This document shows positions 9,201 to 45,348 of a DNA stretch of 45,889 bases, piece by piece. Location: assembly GCA_000708835.1 (NCBI GenBank), contig DF237615.1:1-45889 (forward strand), written 5' to 3'. The translations under genes and the position numbers were made by a program. Position 1 is the stretch's first letter. Every line of letters begins with the position of its first letter. Under the pieces are notes generated by a model that saw nothing but the letters and a program-made list of their open reading frames with translations, did not search any database and had not been told where the DNA came from. Origin of the DNA: Klebsormidium nitens. Its lineage: Eukaryota > Plantae > Klebsormidiophyceae.

Positions 9201-11673
9201 ACAGTCCTAAAGTCAGCTCTGCCTGCATATTCTGCCTGCTCTTTCTTCCCCTTGGAAGGAAGGTTCAAAGCGTGGATTCCAGCACAAAGCCCTGAAATAG
9301 ACTTCTCTGTCCTGTTTCCCGACTGCTTTTAATCTCATCCACCTTGAAACCTCAATCCGTTTCCTGCAAGGCGACCCACTTGCTCTCTCGCCACTTCCCA
9401 GGTCGCCATCCTCGAGAAGCTGAAGGGGGATCCCTCCGCCTGCCAGCTGTACGACTACGGCGTCGACGAGAACTGCTACTACCTCGTCCTGAAGCACTAC
9501 CCGTGTAGCCTAAAGGAATGGCGCCTCAGGCGTGAATTCAGGCCCGCCGCAAAATCCTCTAGAGGTTCAGCGGAACCCTCTAGCGGTGCCGCCGGCCAAG
9601 GAACCTCTAGCGGTTCGGCGGAACCGTTTAGAGGTTCCCACGGGCGGCAGGAGCTGGGGCTCTACTTAGAGGTTTTCGCGGCGGTTCTAGAGGCGGCGAG
9701 TAACGTGGCGGAGAAAGGGATCATCCACTTCGACCTCAAGTGCGACAACGTTCTGCTGGAGCCGTTGCCGGGGGTCTCGGAAGAGCGATTCTGGGGCCCC
9801 CCCCTAAGTTGCGGCAGCTCAGCCGTCGATTCTTCACTCATTGAGGCTACAGCCGTTGATTTCGCGACTGATCCGTCCTCAGCCGTACAGACAGCAGAGA
9901 ACCGCGAATTAGAAATGAACCCGGTTCAGTCCAAGCAGGGAAACCCCTCCAAGGCACCCGTTTTAGAACCGGCCCCCCGATCCCGATCTGTACATAAGTT
10001 CCTCCGAAGGCTCTCTTCTAAACCGTCCAACCGGGCCCTTCAAACGGCAGTCCAAAGTCAGGTGCTGAATCCAGTTTCAGAAATCCTCCCTTTGAGTCAC
10101 CCAGCAATCCCGGTTAGCGACGGGGTTAAGCCGCGGGGTTACGCCCTGCCCTTCCGAGTCGTTCTGGCGGACTTTGGGCAGAGCAAGATCTGCCGTCAGT
10201 CTGACGTCAGCGGGGGCGTCACCGTCCGCAATCGTGGCACGGAGTTTGTGAAGAGTCCTGAGATGCTCACGGTGTTCCACGCGGCGCGGGCCTCCGAAGC
10301 GGGGGGACCGAAGAAAGTGAGTGTCTTTTCTCTTTCTTTTTTTTCTTTCTTTTTTTTTGTTTCTTTTTATCAAAGTCATCTGGCCGTAAGCAACTCGTCA
10401 TGGAGGAGGCTGCTGACTGGCATACGCGGTAAAGCGATGGAGAAGGAGGCGAGTGTCGATGTGCTAGATCCAGGATTGATGCGGTGAAAGCCGTTATGAA
10501 AGTGCGAGAAAGAGATTTCGAGATCGACGAGGAGTGTGTAAGAAGCTTGGAGCCACAACATTTACAGGGGGAGAGAAGAGATAAAACATCACTACCAGGT
10601 CTTGAACATTTTGTACACTCCGAGGAAGATCTGATTTGATGTTCTTGTGTTTATGATCTGGTTTTCAAGGATTAACGCAAGTCGTTATCGATGTTAACCC
10701 CGTTTTCTCCCTGTCTCCGCAGCTGGGCGCGGGCAAAGAGAGCGACGTGTAGTCGCTGGGCTGCCTTCTAAGTTGACGCCTCGTGAACGTAACCACGGAC
10801 GTAACCAATGGGCACGTTTGGGATCGATCAAAACCGGATCCAACTACTGACGGTCTTGCTTACCTGTTTCTACAGCTGGCCGCCGGCAAAGAAAGCGACA
10901 TCTCGCCTCTCATCGCCACGCTTTGAAAGCTGGTTTCAATGAGAACCAAAGCGGTTATTGAAGCTAACCCGGTTTTTGCATGTTGTCACAGCTGGGCGCG
11001 GGCAGAGAGAGCGACGTGTGGTCGCTGGGCTGTTTGCTGTACGACAGAGGTGACGTCTCGTCAACCTAACCACCCACATAACTGACGGGCACCTTTTGGA
11101 TCGAACTAATCTGAAACCAACTACTGACGGTTTTGCTTATTTGTCTCTGCAGTTGGGTGCCGGCAAAGAGAGCGACGTGTGGTCGCTGGGCTGCTTGCTG
11201 TACGAGTTGCTCGTGGGCGATTTCCTCTTCTACGACGAGGACTGGGTGCGCTTCTTCATCCGGGTTACGTCCGCTAACCAGGTGGGTTATCTTTCCCCTC
11301 CGCCTTCTCCTTCTTTCGTCCGGTTCATCCTCGATCTAAAAATAGCCCAGTCTTTGGGCATCATCCACTTTTGTTTCTTTTGAACGTTGCTCGCGTGCAA
11401 TCCTTTGCGCTCTTAGCCGCTATTCAATACGTGCAGGACTTGCTCACGAGCAGATCTGCTGAAGACTTAGCCGCTCCTATGTCCGCTTCATCAAAACGAC
11501 ATTGACCTTTGCAGGAGCTCATCTCGTCAGAGAAGGCTGCGAAGCTCGGCAACGATCCGGCGATCCTGGATTTTCTCCGGTTCGCACTGGTGCAAGACCC
11601 GTCGAAACGCCCTTCCCTTGCGCAACTCGTATCCAGATTCGACGGCGTCCGTGCCGCACACAAGGCACGGTAG
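240..11673 (+). CDS. Very large multi-exon Ser/Thr protein kinase with a C-terminal non-RD kinase domain. Proposed exons: 240-626 (uncertain), 1089-2669, 3115-3268, 3713-8099, 8503-8938, 9402-10316, 11153-11281, 11515-11673; about 2,715 aa if the first exon is right.
   Basis: All junctions are GT-AG and phase-consistent. The spliced translation gives kinase subdomains in order: RIAEGASAHV (Gly-loop variant), VALKM, DLYSE, IIHFDLKCDNVLL, LADFG, RGTEFVKSPEML, SDVWSLGCLLYELLVGDFLF, DPSKRPS. Stop TAG is at 11671-11673. The join of 240-626 to 1089 is in phase but has no homology support. Confidence 0.85.
4780..4935 (+). repeat. In-frame 21-bp-period coding minisatellite (core GACCGTCCG) encoding (D/E)RP heptapeptide repeats
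   Basis: Cores start at 4780, 4801, 4822, 4843, 4864, 4885 and 4927 (spacing 21 bp, or 42 for the last). Translation: ERPNVAADRPAIIPDRPVTPSDRPAVALDRLTTSSDRV. Confidence 0.85.
9556..9638 (+). repeat. Near-palindromic coding repeat (GAACCTCTAG[A/C]GGTTC-like) inserted in the kinase domain
   Basis: CCTCTAG at 9556, 9577 and 9604, and degenerate CGTTTAG at 9625. It encodes SSRGSAEPSSGAAGQGTSSGSAEPFRGS between the hinge region and the catalytic loop. Confidence 0.75.
10690..11152 (+). repeat. Three decayed intronic copies of the 3' splice site plus the start of kinase exon 11153-11281
   Basis: CAG followed by CTGGGCGCGGGCAAAGAGAGCGACGTG-like sequence at 10723, 10876 and 10992; the functional copy is at 11153. 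Copy 1 has TGG changed to TAG. Upstream intron blocks are also duplicated (CAACTACTGACGG near 10841 and 11118). Confidence 0.9.
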
Positions 11674-12537
11674 AGCTGAGCTCGAACGAAACGGGGTGGA
11701 GTTGCCGTGCTGGTAGTAAACTTGGAGACCGGTTTGTACAGTAGTGTAAATCACATTGTAAGAGACGGTCGGTTGAGTAACTGGTTATGAGCAAGGTCTT
11801 AGTGACCGATGGTGCAAAGGACTTGATAGAAAGTGAGTACAGCACGCAGAAAGGACGGGCCGTAGGTTTGTCAACATGACTGAGCGGCCATGCCGCGATC
11901 ATACTTCGCGCACGAGCCTTGTCGGCTTGTAGTCATGCTAGCTCGTCGGACTCAGACACATGTGCCAACCGGCCTTCAGATGTGCACATGTACTGCCCAA
12001 AGCCGGCTGTTACAATATACTGAGAACCCGAGTTGTAAGTTTTAAGCTGATTTCTACCTTGCCAAGCCACATGCACAGTGTTACCTCGATATCGCCTCGG
12101 CGCGCGCATTAGTGTGATTGTGGGGGGGCGCGCAAGGACACCCCGGGCGCCGGGCCAAGTGAGATATATGCCAAAGAAGATGATACACAGCACTTGAACG
12201 AGTATAATGGTGGGCTGTATGCCGGAATGTGCTGCCAGATACTAGCGGGCGTCATTCGAACCACCTAGATCGCGCGCGTTAAGCAAGAAAAAGAAAGCTG
12301 GACGCAGACTACAGTACGTGCGCGCGCTAATATGGCGATTAAAGGCAAGTCAGTGTCCGTCAACGTACAATACAAACCCGGCCATCTGGAATATAATTGG
12401 GAAATCATTGGGAAATTCATTGCAGTTGCATGATATCGACATGAAGATCGGCCTTTGGATGGTCAAGAGCGCCAAACCAAACATTCCTTCGACTAGACAT
12501 AACAGGCTGGATAACGGACCGCGGCTGGCAATGAAAT

Positions 12538-38156: not shown

Positions 38157-39842
38157 CGCGTTGCATTCTGGTCAACTGTTTGCAAGTGTTCTTGACGGAT
38201 CGCCATTCTGTCGATCCGCCGTTTTCGTTTGCGGGATTGATACATTGTAACAGAGCTCCTTCGGAATTCTTGGTGAATGACTGGGTCTTGTATGAAAGAG
38301 AAAATTTATTCATTCAAGTCACGGATCTCCTGTCGGGTGTTTGCACGACGGGTGATCGTCATGTGGCTTAGTGAAATGCAGCTTCTCCCACCGACTCTTG
38401 TTTCTGAGCAACATGAATGCCAACGAGTGTTCGGTTGTCGGATGAAGTACGGTTGTGGAAGGGCGTTTGAGCAAAGACTTAAGCTCTGACTGGATGACGC
38501 GAATTAGCTGTACTTGATCGAGATTACGAACAGAATTCATGCATGGTTGTCGTATCAGATACCCAATTTATGTCTGACTTTTATAAAATTAGTGCTTGCC
38601 GTCTACATATAATCACGGTATATGAAGAGCTTGATCACTTGACAATGATCCGGCCTTTCCATTCAGTCATTCAAAGGCAAGTACGTGATCGATCGCCGAT
38701 GATGGGCAGTGCTTTTTGCTCGTATATATCTTTTGGTATGGTATCTGTCGTTCTCCTTCTGAACACGCTCGCCTGCCGCTGTAGGTCCAGATTGAAATGC
38801 AGAAAGTGCATCACGAGGCCCACTTTTCTTGCACAGCTTGTCGGTCGGCCGATCCATGCACGTGCATGGTGCAGTGGAGCACTGCAAGGTCGGGAATTCC
38901 GGCATGTGTGGACCGTCGTACGTAAAGTATCGTATCTACCAGGCCCGGCTGCATCTCGGGCCCGTTAAACACAGCTAGCATGCATCGAAGGTGTCATGCA
39001 TGCAGCTCGCCTTATGGTTAGAGCTCACGACTTTCCCAGCGGCGCTACCGCACTGTCTGCCGTTCCATGTGCGATGCATCATGTCCCCGCGCCGTTCAGT
39101 GGAGCCCGAGTATGGCGGCTTTGTGGTAGAATAGTAGAACATAGATGTAGCATGCATACTAATACCGTGTTTACATATGCATTCAGACGTGCCAACGATG
39201 GCCGTACGAAATCGAATTGCTTTCAAAGCATGGCAATACTATACTTCTCCGTATATTGCAGTGGCAGTCACTGCACGGCTGGCCAGCCAACGTCAGCACA
39301 TACGAAGTCTAGTATATTCGAGCCAGCGCTGCACAGGTCCACGAGTCAAGTCCTTCTACCAATGCTTAGAGGTTTCTGGATCTCCACGAGTCCTCGTTCT
39401 AGACTTTCTAAGATTCTAATTAATAGATCCTATCGTCTATCAGATTCTCGTACGTTCGGAGCCCAAATTAATCTTGAGGTTGTTTGACGAATCAAGCTTT
39501 CGTGATCTTCATGATTGACTTAATCGATTGAAGACATCCGGCATGTCTTCTTAAGTACGCTGCTTTAAGGAAATCAGCACTTCGGCTACCTTCTCTCTCT
39601 GCAAGTTATCGGGTATTAGAAACTTCAATTCGAGCCTTATAAAGGATTCTAGAGAGAAAAAGCTTTGCGAAAATTAGTTGGAAGAACCTTTGACGTAATC
39701 TTGTAATCTAAACTACTCAGTACTAGTTGGAAGTATTGTCGAGGGTCACTTCTTTTGACAGTCCCTATACGGAAATTGATGTGCAGTACTTTGCTGCTTG
39801 ATACTTATCAAATTATTGGATGCGGGTGGAGCATGATTGGTT

Positions 39843-42800
39843 CTACACGTGGCTCGAAGTGGTTGGATATAAGTTTGGCACATGACTCATGCGCCTCATC
39901 GGAATCGTCTCTAATGAACCGCCCTTCAGTTCCTCGTCGCTTGTGACAATCTCCTTAAAATGCGCCGGCCACGGGAGAGCCCATTCACGACGTAGGTCGT
40001 AAGCGAAGAACATGCCAAAAATGGCCGTGACAAGCGACCAGCCCGCTACAATTTGTGAGAGAATGATGGTCCAATTGATGGGGCTCTTCTCCGTTATGTG
40101 CAACCGTCCTTGCGGGTTAAGAGTTAGCGCCGCATAAAAGTAGTCAGATGCCGGAAAGTCGATTCCATAGGTGCTGTTGAAAGAAGTTACGTAATCCTGG
40201 TGGGTAGTCGCGATACTTCCAGACACCTTCTGCAGAAACGAGGAAGGACCCAATTTGTCAATGACGAAACGCAAATTCTGCCGCGCCAAAGTAGTTGGCC
40301 CAACACGGAGGTTTTCCTTTCAGTTGCAAATTTGGGGGGACTTGTTACACGGTTTGCAACAGCCAAATCGTTATGCTACTATGGCAGGGCGGTTCTGACC
40401 AGGGCGAACATTGATGATGTATCAGGTGCACAAACATCGTAAGCAAACAAACCTAGTTTGTCGATCTTTTGACAAACTTGCCCGAACCTTTTCTTTCTTT
40501 TGACTTTCCAAATTTGTCAGCGCAACGAATCTTTCTCAAGAGGGTTCCTTTGCCCATAACTAAGCTGGTTCTTGCTAGCTCCCAGCTTGTTTAATTTCAG
40601 GACATGGGACTGCTGTAAGATCTAGCATCCCCATGGTAGGCGGGCCGCAGAACCACGAAATGGCCGGGGGACGACCAAGAATCGCAGCGCTGCCGTTCAG
40701 ATTTTGACGTCAAAAAATGAACGCTCTAGATCTTTCCCCGATCTTTCGTTTGTATAGAGTTAGGCAAGGTTTGTCTGAAACCCAGTATCGGAACAGGTCC
40801 TGCTAAATTTTGCGACCCCCTGGCTAAACTTTACAGACTGGAGTCCTTATGTTGAAATCGGACGGTGGCGCTGCGATATCGACCATCGCAAAGTTCTGCG
40901 GTCCGCCTGATGGGATCACACTACACATCATCCATCCGCTCTGCTCTGTCCTGAGCAACTCTACAAGGATGCAAGTGCCACCAGGAGTGCACCAACGCGT
41001 TCCCGCAAGAAAACAATCCGTGTTGCTCAGATTGCCCAAACACACAAGCAGCGTACGATGTGTGTCTACCGTATTGACGGGACACATTCTTTTAAAAGGC
41101 AAGGCCTCTCCATTCGTCTAACATTTGCTCACCTCGGATCCGTTCAGGTACGTCCGCACAGTCAGGGACAACTCTACCTGATCGTTGCCACCTCCGCTGA
41201 TGATCGAACCAGGGAAATCATACTCCCCTCTGCGCACTCCATCGTCCGAAAATGCCGCTAACACATTCGCGCCCCTTGTGTAACCATTAAGCGGGGCCAC
41301 GGGCGGTAGAGTCCAGTAAAAGCTCATGAAGACGCCTTGGAAGGTGCTCGCAATCAACTCCGGTGTGAAACTGAACCTACTAGTGTTGTAGCGCAGGCAT
41401 AGGCTGCTCCCTAGCACTGTGTTGTTTTGGCCCTCATGTGAAAAATCGGGCGAGGGCAGCTCAACGCCTTCCACCTCGTAGTCGCTATCTGTATCGCCCT
41501 TGTACTCGAAGGTCTTCGACGCATCGCGCCTGGAATTGCCCAGCGCCCAATTGACTGACCCGCGGGTCAAACCGGTTGTCAAACCGGTGGCCCCCGGCCC
41601 TGGCACTTGCTTGGGAAAATATCTGTTGCACGAGCCTGTCATGCTTGTGATCGGCAGCGTGGTTGCATAGGAGCTGAAGAATGCATACGGGCATATGTAA
41701 ATGTTTGGCAGCTGCGTGAGTTCCACCTTGTAGTCGAAGGAGACGGCCGGCACATTCCGGCTCCTGTACGCCTGCGAAAGAAAATCAGTGCACGGGGATC
41801 ACAATCGCGGTGAAAGCTCTCGCCCATGAGCTTAGAAGCTTCATTATCCCCCACAAAAGCACGCTGTTTAATGCAGCAGCGACTCATGCTGGAGCTTGGA
41901 ATTGGGCAAATCAGCAAATGCAGTCCTAGCGTACGTAAGCCTCGCCAAAGGCGAGGGTTGACCATGACCGACCATGCGCATCACGCCTAGTTAGTGCATG
42001 GAGTCATGCCTTGGGGGTGTTTTGCGCGTCCGAGACAACTGCCAATGAGCTGACCATCATCATTTCTGTGGGTGCTCACCTCTATGGAGTTTGCAAGTTT
42101 GATTTTAGCAAGTCTTTTTCGAACAAGAGCTTTTCGGCTGTCTTATAAAGAAGAGTCAGAACTCTGCTCTGAGTCTAGCTCTAACTCAAAAAGCTAGCTC
42201 GACTTGTGCCATTCTACCTACAACTTGACTGGCGCATTATGTCCGCACGACAGCACTCCTGCAGTTTATCCCACAAAAGTGCAGGCTTGGCATTGTTCTT
42301 GTGCGGTTCACCCAGAATTGAGGCTTGAAAGCTCCGTCTCCTTTCAGGAACAGATAGAACATTCAACAACCACCATGGGTAACAATGACAAGAACGAAAA
42401 CAAGGTGGGTTTAGGTGCCAGCACTTAGCATGACGCTACTAAGCCGCAATCATGCCATGCACTCAGCAGATAAGTCACAGGTGGCACCCTCCTTGCAACT
42501 GTGTGGGGCCGGCTGATGACGATATATGATACGAAAAATGTTGCTCCCAGCTACCAAGGTAGTTGAAGGGAAAATAACCAGAATCAGCGGCGTATTTCTC
42601 CGAGCAGAGCCCCTAGAGACAAAAAGCCTGGGTCCTGTTTTGGAGGGGAATCCTCAGTGAAGGCACCAAGAACTTCCAGCAAAAGAAGCAACACTTGGGG
42701 AATGTGGTGGGTCCTTACCAGCCAGAACACAGTGGCTGCGTAGCCGATGAAAGCGCACACCAGGACGACGTACATGAACCAAGCGCACCGCCTCAGAGTG

Positions 42801-42853
42801 CGGACGTTCCTGGCCCCGGACTTTATCTCCGTGGGTAACAGAAGGAACGCCAT
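39843..42853 (-). CDS. Two-transmembrane protein with a large extracellular loop (~386 aa); PAC/TMEM206 (proton-activated chloride channel)-like, with DEG/ENaC-type topology. Exons: 42719-42853, 41133-41771, 39843-40229.
   Basis: All three junctions are phase 0 with GT-AG. TM1 is CAWFMYVVLVCAFIGYAATVFWL, followed by PAVSFDYKVELTQLPNIYICP. The loop has N-glycosylation sequons (NNT, NTS, NGS, NST) plus GVFMSF and SIISGGGNDQVELSL. TM2 is WTIILSQIVAGWSLVTAIFGMFF. The exon-3 acceptor could instead be a later CAG. The gene model is more certain than the family call. Confidence 0.75.
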
Positions 42854-43016
42854 TGTTCAATGCAGCTGCCCAGCTCGATAATGCCAATCAGGCCGGTTCC
42901 TGCCCTGTCAAGCTGGAAAGTGGAGTTGGACCAACCTAGCAGAAGACGAGACACAATCTGAAGACCTGAGCTCGAGTCCAGGGCACAAGCCTTCAAAGAC
43001 TGTCATGCAGAGACTC

Positions 43017-43089
43017 CACTTGAGCAATTATGCACTGGTGACTGAAGCCCTGTCAAAGAGTTGAAGACTCACTTGAGCAATTATGCACT
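43017..43089. repeat. Exact 20-bp direct repeat CACTTGAGCAATTATGCACT x2 upstream of the PAC-like gene
   Basis: Copies at 43017-43036 and 43070-43089. Confidence 0.85.
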
Positions 43090-44425: not shown

Positions 44426-45348
44426 TTAACCCTTTGTCGGCGGGGAAACTTTCGGTCAATTCTACCGCACGTGAATTTTCGCGATAATCGCAAAATCAAA
44501 TTTGGACCGTCCGATCGATCGAGCGGACGGCGCCGATGGTATATACTGACGGTCCGGCACGCCGGTCCGCGACGGTAGCAGTCAAACACTTCCGCGCANN
44601 NNNNNNNNNNNNNNNNNNNNNNNNNNNNNNNNNNNNNNNNNNNNNNNNNNNNNNNNNNNNNNNNNNNNNNNNNNNNNNNNNNNNNNNNNNNNNNNNNNNN
44701 NNNNNNNNNNNNNNNNNNNNNNNNNNNNNNNNNNNNNNNNNNNNNNNNNNNNNNNNNNNNNNNNNNNNNNNNNNNNNNNNNNNNNNNNNNNNNNNNNNNN
44801 NNNNNNNNNNNNNNNNNNNNNNNNNNNNNNNNNNNNNNNNNNNNNNNNNNNNNNNNNNNNNNNNNNNNNNNNNNNNNNNNNNNNNNNNNNNNNNNNNNNN
44901 NNNNNNNNNNNNNNNNNNNNNNNNNNNNNNNNNNNNNNNNNNNNNNNNNNNNNNNNNNNNNNNNNNNNNNNNNNNNNNNNNNNNNNNNNNNNNNNNNNNN
45001 NNNNNNNNNNNNNNNNNNNNNNNNNNNNNNNNNNNNNNNNNNNNNNNNNNNNNNNNNNNNNNNNNNNNNNNNNNNNNNNNNNNNNNNNNNNNNNNNNNNN
45101 NNNNNNNNNNNNNNNTACAGTCCACTAGGGCAACAGGGCAACATAGGGGTACCCGAGTGTACTCGTACAAAACCCCCCGGAACCCCCCAAAACATTTTTT
45201 TCTTATTTTTGTATTTTTCTTTGGGTCGATTGACACCTCCTTCCGAAGTTTCGGGTCAAAGGGTTCGCTTTTGGGTGTTGTTGCCACGCGTTTTCATAGA
45301 GTGTTAAAGAAAAGCAACAAAAGGCAACACCCGCCGACAAAGGGTTAA
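44426..45348. mobile_element. piggyBac-type DNA transposon ends (non-autonomous, or with a collapsed interior) spanning the assembly gap
   Basis: TTAA (44426-44429) + CCCTTTGTCGGCGGG (44430-44444) on the left; CCCGCCGACAAAGGG (45330-45344) + TTAA (45345-45348) on the right. These are perfect 15-bp inverted repeats flanked by a TTAA duplication. No transposase sequence is visible. Confidence 0.8.
44599..45115. other. Assembly gap (517 N)
   Basis: Run of n characters; the true length is unknown. Confidence 1.

Follow-up and report, generated by a model that had tools for sequence, protein, structure and literature searches.

The stretch analyzed here of the genome of Klebsormidium nitens, a streptophyte (charophyte) green alga (contig DF237615.1, positions 1 to 45,889; 45,889 nucleotides (nt), hereafter the window) carries on its minus strand the gene KFL_006660060, whose product is a protein with two hydrophobic helices on either side of a large loop. 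The single most likely reading, which we hold tentatively, is that this protein (P0005 below) is a subunit of the architectural class that comprises the proton-activated chloride channel (PAC, also TMEM206 or PACC1) and the DEG/ENaC channels. In the predicted models, PAC is the nearest characterized family by every structure-aware method used. A PAC-like architecture is plausible; membership of TMEM206 is not demonstrable, the PF15122 profile test having failed, and the acid gating proposed as possible in a preliminary description of the locus, made from the sequence alone, is pure conjecture. The gene itself is genuine, expressed and under purifying selection.

Topology and predicted architecture

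Kyte-Doolittle hydropathy (19-residue windows >1.6) identified hydrophobic helices in P0005 at residues 22–48 and 311–333 only, taken as transmembrane (TM) helices TM1 and TM2. They are separated by a loop of ∼262 residues, and a C-terminal tail of 53 amino acids (aa) follows. Basic residues are clustered ahead of TM1 (K11, R15, R18, R21 and R22) and after TM2 (DLRRE), which is consistent with termini in the cytosol and a loop on the other side of the membrane. The N-x-S/T sequons, five in number (N161, N174, N255, N276 and N310), all fall within the loop, N174 being invariant in the family, and the loop is presumably glycosylated. The loop holds three cysteines only (C72, C93 and C170). No lysine or arginine occurs in the TM2 region (residues 311–335); the first basic residues, R338 and R339, lie beyond the helix. 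The arrangement given in the preliminary description (TM1, a glycosylated loop of ∼270 aa, TM2 and a short tail) stands for the two helices, the approximate loop length and the sequons, while the glycosylation itself is a prediction.

By hydropathy, charges and sequons, P0005 has the two TM helices, cytosolic termini and large extracellular domain that define PAC topology. The two proteins are of similar length (350 aa in PAC, 386 aa in P0005) and, relative to the PAC structures 7JNA, 7SQG, 8H8D and 7JI3, P0005 would share with PAC its pair of TM helices, the cytosolic location of both termini and a β-rich ectodomain that includes one small helical insert. As a subunit of the PAC/DEG-ENaC class, P0005 would be a two-pass membrane glycoprotein with both termini cytosolic and a β-rich domain of ∼262 aa on the outer or luminal side. 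The order of its elements would be TM1, a β-domain of about 10–12 strands with one short helical insert, and TM2, and the protein would form a homotrimer in which TM2 provides most of the lining of the ion pore. The fold, the oligomerization and any channel activity are features that we infer.

Fold-level comparisons

Two AlphaFold2 models were built. The first used an alignment of the four lineages of the family (P0005 and the three algal relatives described below) and reached a predicted local distance difference test score (pLDDT) of 48.5 and a predicted template modeling score (pTM) of 0.37; addition of the exon-3 pieces from two of the relatives (contigs L002 and L005) gave a second model with values of 50.6 and 0.41. 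The exon-1 pieces of the same two contigs were left out of the second alignment because their TM1 was misaligned onto TM2. Both models show two long helices around 10–11 strands and one short helix (residues 221–225).

When the models were compared with the PDB using Foldseek, PAC chains (PAC/ASOR/TMEM206) occupied ranks 1–13 for model 1 (E 4.9e-5 to 5e-3, probability ≤1.00, ∼350 columns), and PAC/ASOR was again at rank 1 for model 2 (E 3.6e-4). Within the Swiss-Prot portion of the AlphaFold database (AFDB), human PACC1 was the first match (E 1.4e-4, probability 0.99), and eight of the top nine entries were PACC1 orthologues. The ESM Atlas holds its own model of P0005 (pTM 0.46), which aligned to the PAC cluster with TM-scores of 0.50/0.52 over 264 residues; its structural neighbors also include a cluster of the DEG/ENaC family ASC (0.51/0.49).

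Language-model features placed closest to P0005 the unnamed, uncharacterized Mucoromycota clusters labeled “Transmembrane protein” (score 0.96, 222 of 256 features), with ciliate clusters carrying PF27811 (Y80K_N) at 0.91. Among other families named in Pfam, the scores were 0.85 for one WW-domain cluster, 0.84 for TMEM206, 0.73 for P2X, 0.69 for ERGIC and 0.68 for ASC. The Mucoromycota two-TM clusters and the ciliate PF27811 proteins are thus the closest to P0005 by these features and also by Atlas structure (TM-score 0.55–0.57 by query), yet HMMER did not detect them from the profile of the P0005 family. Unnamed two-TM proteins also appeared among the AFDB clusters (E 9e-6 to 3e-4). The top match of that search, A0A1Y1HMT9 (469 aa, E 8.8e-6), is possibly another K. 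nitens protein, to judge by accession ranges.

Several properties of these comparisons weigh against the PAC/DEG-ENaC reading. Both models are poor by pLDDT and rest on an alignment of only four lineages; the Foldseek TM-scores are 0.2–0.35, the fold alignments to PAC have 11–14% identity, and clearly unrelated β-rich membrane proteins have E-values only 10- to 100-fold worse than those of PAC. An Atlas shape search with the AlphaFold2 model returned unrelated bacterial β proteins at TM-scores <0.3 and was uninformative. The structural comparison thus placed PAC/ASOR first in both the PDB and Swiss-Prot, but at low TM-scores and from poor models.

The same searches bear on a different reading, in which P0005 would be a two-TM protein other than a channel, with a luminal or extracellular β-sandwich, akin to the ERGIC/Erv41-Erv46 cargo receptors or to TMEM231 of the ciliary transition zone. 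ERGIC3, Erv41-Erv46 and TMEM231 likewise have two TM helices around a luminal or extracellular β-sandwich of similar size to that of P0005, and they serve as cargo-receptor or ciliary-gate proteins, not as pores. ERV/ERGIC clusters are among the Atlas neighbors (TM-scores 0.47/0.59 and 0.49/0.40), ERGIC3 is among the Swiss-Prot Foldseek matches (E 1e-2), and an AFDB cluster named “Transmembrane protein 231 (Fragment)” has the best TM-score of its list (0.35/0.46, E 1e-4). Within the otherwise variable cytosolic tail of the family, moreover, a short motif, (N/D)LY(P/S), is conserved and on this account would be a sorting signal. However, the Foldseek probability is 0.2–0.28 for ERGIC3 and 0.75–0.99 for PAC, the language-model score is likewise lower for ERGIC than for PAC, and neither ERGIC_N (PF13850), COPIIcoated_ERV (PF07970) nor TM231 (PF10149) was matched in Pfam at E≤10. 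We consider a protein of this kind unlikely.

Sequence tests against PAC and DEG/ENaC

Pfam was searched with hmmscan at E≤10 using P0005, its three relatives (P0001, P0002 and P0003) and the exon pieces. None of these queries matched PF15122 (TMEM206), and exon 2 alone matched no family. The sole family listed was ASC (PF00858, DEG/ENaC), below its gathering score of 23.6 bits: P0005 scored 17.1 bits (E 3.1e-3; residues 18–81 against profile positions 18–83 of 455) and P0001 19.3 bits (E 6.3e-4) in identical register. This match extends over TM1 and the first strand only. Searches of the PDB gave no closer connection, since phmmer with the exon pieces and the whole protein returned only chance chaperonin matches at E>1 and hmmsearch with the family profile returned no chain at E≤10. 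The expected profile match to TMEM206 or ASC therefore did not materialize, and the superfamily membership put forward in the preliminary description is left with PAC as the first fold match but with no TMEM206 membership by profile.

Of the four human PAC fragments to which P0005 had been aligned in that description, the three longer than the 6-aa LVFLQF were queried and proved to be exact (human PAC residues 99–120, 229–254 and 280–314). Each of the three was aligned to P0005 by Smith-Waterman and scored against 2000 shuffles. The first fragment matched best at P0005 residues 53–73 (score 29, reached by 4.8% of shuffles) and the second at residues 237–258 (score 27, 15%), both where they had been placed, but the third, which covers the pre-TM2 and TM2 region, matched best elsewhere, at residues 340–356 (score 31, 6.6%). 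Its proposed pairing with residues 288–322 scored 18, a value reached by 99.5% of shuffles. By this test none of the three long motifs is significantly above shuffles; two of the ordered placements stand, without significance, and the TM2 pairing is at chance level.

These results bear most directly on the possibility that P0005 is a true PAC/TMEM206 orthologue or family member and hence an acid-gated, outwardly rectifying chloride channel. In favor of this are the rank of PAC as the top fold match and a weak pattern, P..S..YK...P.I...P, that follows TM1 both in P0005 and in human PAC 99–120. Against it stand the silent PF15122 profile, the low identity of the fold alignments, the chance-level TM2 pairing and a TM2 with no basic residue. 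In human PAC, the basic TM2 residue that sets anion selectivity is K319; as P0005 has no lysine or arginine in TM2, it has no counterpart of this residue. The distributions also differ, the P0005 family being confined to streptophyte algae whereas TMEM206 homologues have been reported only from vertebrates and one hemichordate (PMC6663466). Membership of TMEM206 is accordingly judged highly improbable.

DEG/ENaC/ASIC proteins (PF00858) are of the same topology class as P0005. DEG/ENaC channels are marked by a His-Gly motif conserved ahead of TM1 and by extracellular domains rich in cysteine. The His-Gly is absent among the four N-termini of the family and, with three loop cysteines, both hallmarks are missing; compared with DEG/ENaC proteins, the ectodomain of P0005 is also far smaller and lacks a cysteine-rich thumb or finger. 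Two short resemblances can be set beside this. The VPAVS that follows TM1 in P0005 is reminiscent of the FPAVT-type motif of DEG/ENaC. The selectivity filter of DEG/ENaC in TM2 is G/S-x-S, and P0005 has G321-W322-S323 in its TM2 (G-W-S/G/T in the four lineages), an equivalence that no ASC alignment of TM2 supports.

The failure of the sequence tests also favors a reading in which P0005 is a lineage-restricted two-pass protein whose ectodomain fold and function lie outside the characterized families, so that its likeness to PAC would consist of the order of helix, β-rich domain and helix, together with length, seen through a poor model. The low Foldseek TM-scores, the lack of any Pfam family above threshold, the non-significant PAC motif scores and the presence of several unrelated two-TM families at similar TM-scores all fit such a protein, as does the recovery of three relatives only among 1.84 billion cluster representatives (see below). 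It would not, however, readily account for PAC being consistently first in the PDB, in Swiss-Prot and in the independent, ESMFold-based Atlas comparison. P2X, which is also a β-rich trimer of two-TM subunits of similar size, is absent among the 50 PDB matches listed per model and lies below PAC by language-model features, and the Mucoromycota neighbors by those features suggest a wider family. We regard a fold of this kind as possible, while leaning against it.

Given the weak signals, the poor models and the competing sandwich proteins with two TM helices that are not channels, the reading of P0005 as a PAC/DEG-ENaC-type subunit is held at somewhat less than even confidence. It nonetheless ranks first, ahead of an unrepresented fold, which in turn ranks ahead of an ERGIC/TMEM231-like protein.

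A narrow algal family

To find relatives, 1.84 billion cluster representatives were searched exhaustively by phmmer, with exon 2 as the query (E≤1e-3). Four proteins were returned, three of which are true relatives, all of them algal; the fourth, P0004, was discarded as a low-complexity repeat protein. The closest relative, P0001 (368 aa), is 68% identical to P0005 over exon 2 and 69% over the whole protein. It is encoded by an intronless Logan contig of 1558 nt (L001), evidently a transcript, whose blocks of similarity to the window stop at the same exon borders as those of KFL_006660060. The other two were found as exon-2 open reading frames (ORFs), P0002 (47% identity to P0005) on a genomic contig (L002) and P0003 (38% identity) on a 101-kb metagenome contig (L005). 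Matching exons 1 and 3 were located on both contigs, with an identical three-exon, phase-0 layout. Word-indexed searches with the orthologue and with a four-sequence profile yielded family members only, and two scans of metagenomes for peptides conserved in the family (among them EKSP.NW and NVP..S.DY) yielded pattern matches and no confirmed relative. As far as these sequences indicate, the family is very narrow and so far found only in Klebsormidium-like streptophyte algae.

Conservation within the family is concentrated in blocks, namely RNVP..(S/G).DY.VE...LP..Y.CP.A after TM1, FNTS(R/K)F, and G.L...EKSP.NWT leading into TM2. The block after TM1 is also where the first of the proposed PAC motifs and the sub-threshold ASC match are located. 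Between the coding sequence (CDS) of the window and L001, the ratio of nonsynonymous to synonymous substitution rates (dN/dS, Nei-Gojobori) was 0.28 at a dS of 0.76.

A check of synteny between the window and L002 or L005 found the gene itself to be the only shared item. In L002, the sole in-phase end of exon 1 before a stop (3245/3246) is followed by GCGAGC instead of GT, so that intron 1 of this relative, at its conserved position, may be of the GC-AG type. L005 also encodes on its minus strand (9811–11946) a 711-aa MscS-like protein (PF00924), the best named matches of which are from K. nitens at 35–38% identity. Because even the best of these reaches only 38%, L005 is attributed to a more distant, unsampled streptophyte-type alga.

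Significance of a possible PAC-like protein in algae

DEG/ENaC channels have been treated as essentially animal, the rare exceptions being from Heterokonta and Filasterea (PMC9822975), and PAC has been considered structurally convergent with, or unrelated in sequence to, ASIC/ENaC (PMC7904269). Literature searches found nothing relevant on algal, plant or fungal relatives of PAC or of DEG/ENaC. Were the PAC/DEG-ENaC reading correct, a new candidate class of ion channel would be placed in the lineage ancestral to land plants. A streptophyte-algal protein with this architecture would also bear directly on the choice between a common ancient origin of the fold and convergence. A bolder proposal, which we think rather unlikely, is that Klebsormidium and its relatives possess a true trimeric channel of the PAC/DEG-ENaC fold that is undetectable by sequence and that, together with the two-TM families of Mucoromycota and ciliates, would make the architecture pan-eukaryotic and older than animals; the plant lineage would thereby gain its first member.

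Should the resemblance to PAC prove spurious, a conserved, expressed and uncharacterized family of membrane proteins would still be left, although of modest interest. With a secure gene model and a full-length transcript at hand, the question of channel activity can be addressed directly by expression and recording, and KFL_006660060 is best seen as a worthwhile, testable candidate rather than a demonstrated channel.

Gene structure and transcription

The preliminary description had proposed three in-phase exons and a protein of ∼386 aa, and this was borne out: the spliced CDS of 1161 nt translates exactly to the deposited 386-aa entry (“hypothetical protein KFL_006660060 [Klebsormidium nitens]”). 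The features of the gene are listed in Table 1.

Table 1. Features of KFL_006660060 and its product in the window.
Feature	Position	Strand	Description
Transcribed span	39500–43015	minus	From RNA contigs; 5' end to at least 43015; 3' untranslated region continues past 39500 (contig ∼200 nt longer)
Coding exon 1	42853–42719	minus	Residues 1–45; K/R-rich, putatively cytosolic N-terminus and most of TM1; ATG to CTG/GTAAGG, donor confirmed by RNA
Intron 1	42718–41772	minus	947 nt, GT..AG, phase 0; RNA joint
Coding exon 2	41771–41133	minus	Residues 46–258; end of TM1 and most of predicted extracytosolic β-rich loop; tttcgcag/GCG to GAG/GTGAGC
Post-TM1 conserved block	41759–41682	minus	Residues 50–75; RNVP, DY.VE and LP..Y.CP.A invariant in four lineages
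Intron 2	41132–40230	minus	903 nt, GT..AG, phase 0; RNA joint
Coding exon 3	40229–39843	minus	Residues 259–386 and stop (39845–39843); end of loop, TM2 and putatively cytosolic tail
Pre-TM2 conserved block	40109–40068	minus	Residues 299–312; G.L...EKSP.NWT in four lineages
TM2	40073–40005	minus	Residues 311–333; outer half conserved (T312, Q317, G321, W322); no basic residue
C-terminal (N/D)LY(P/S) motif	39875–39864	minus	Kept in 4/4 lineages; remaining tail variable

Evidence from RNA was drawn from Logan contigs of K. nitens runs, the contigs of four runs being placed on the locus. In 12 probable RNA runs from three K. nitens studies, 13–42% of the sampled words of positions 39700–43000 were present, approximately the exonic share. 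The joints 40229 to 41133 (skipping 903 nt) and 41770/1 to 42718/9 (skipping 947 nt) each occurred in two RNA runs, and both read CT..AC on the plus strand, that is, GT..AG on the strand of the gene. Furthermore, a single RNA contig of 1873 nt (run X2) covers 43015–42718, 41770–41133 and 40229–39500 with zero mismatches. As this contig spans all three exons, TM1, the loop and TM2 are joined in one RNA, a joining whose absence the preliminary description had named as a refutation. The exons that the preliminary description had wished to see verified by RNA are thus confirmed, both introns being spliced.

For exon 3, two acceptors are in frame: a weak one at 40316 (aag/GAA) and another at 40229 (ccttcctcgtttctgcag/AAG). 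With the former, the loop would be 29 residues longer and the protein would have 415 aa; this model was rejected, since the RNA joints and the orthologue transcript use 40229. None of the RNA joints in the contigs of the four runs used 40316, and the orthologue P0001 lacks the 29-residue segment (40230–40316).

Low-depth RNA contigs were also found at intron 2 (40202–40288, 40307–40519 and 40747–40923), together with a loose contig end at 40668. They could represent a retained or unspliced intron, a small intronic element or a separate transcript. Intron 2 contains two pairs of imperfect inverted repeats (40638–40666 with 40880–40908, and 40681–40696 with 40862–40877).

Near the right end of the window, a run of 517 N (44599–45115) marks an assembly gap, and the ORFs listed across it are artefacts. 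Lastly, a perfect 20-nt direct repeat, CACTTGAGCAATTATGCACT, is present at 43017–43036 and 43070–43089, the copies being 53 nt apart. The longest RNA contig has its 5' end at 43015, directly downstream of this repeat, which may be a promoter-proximal element.

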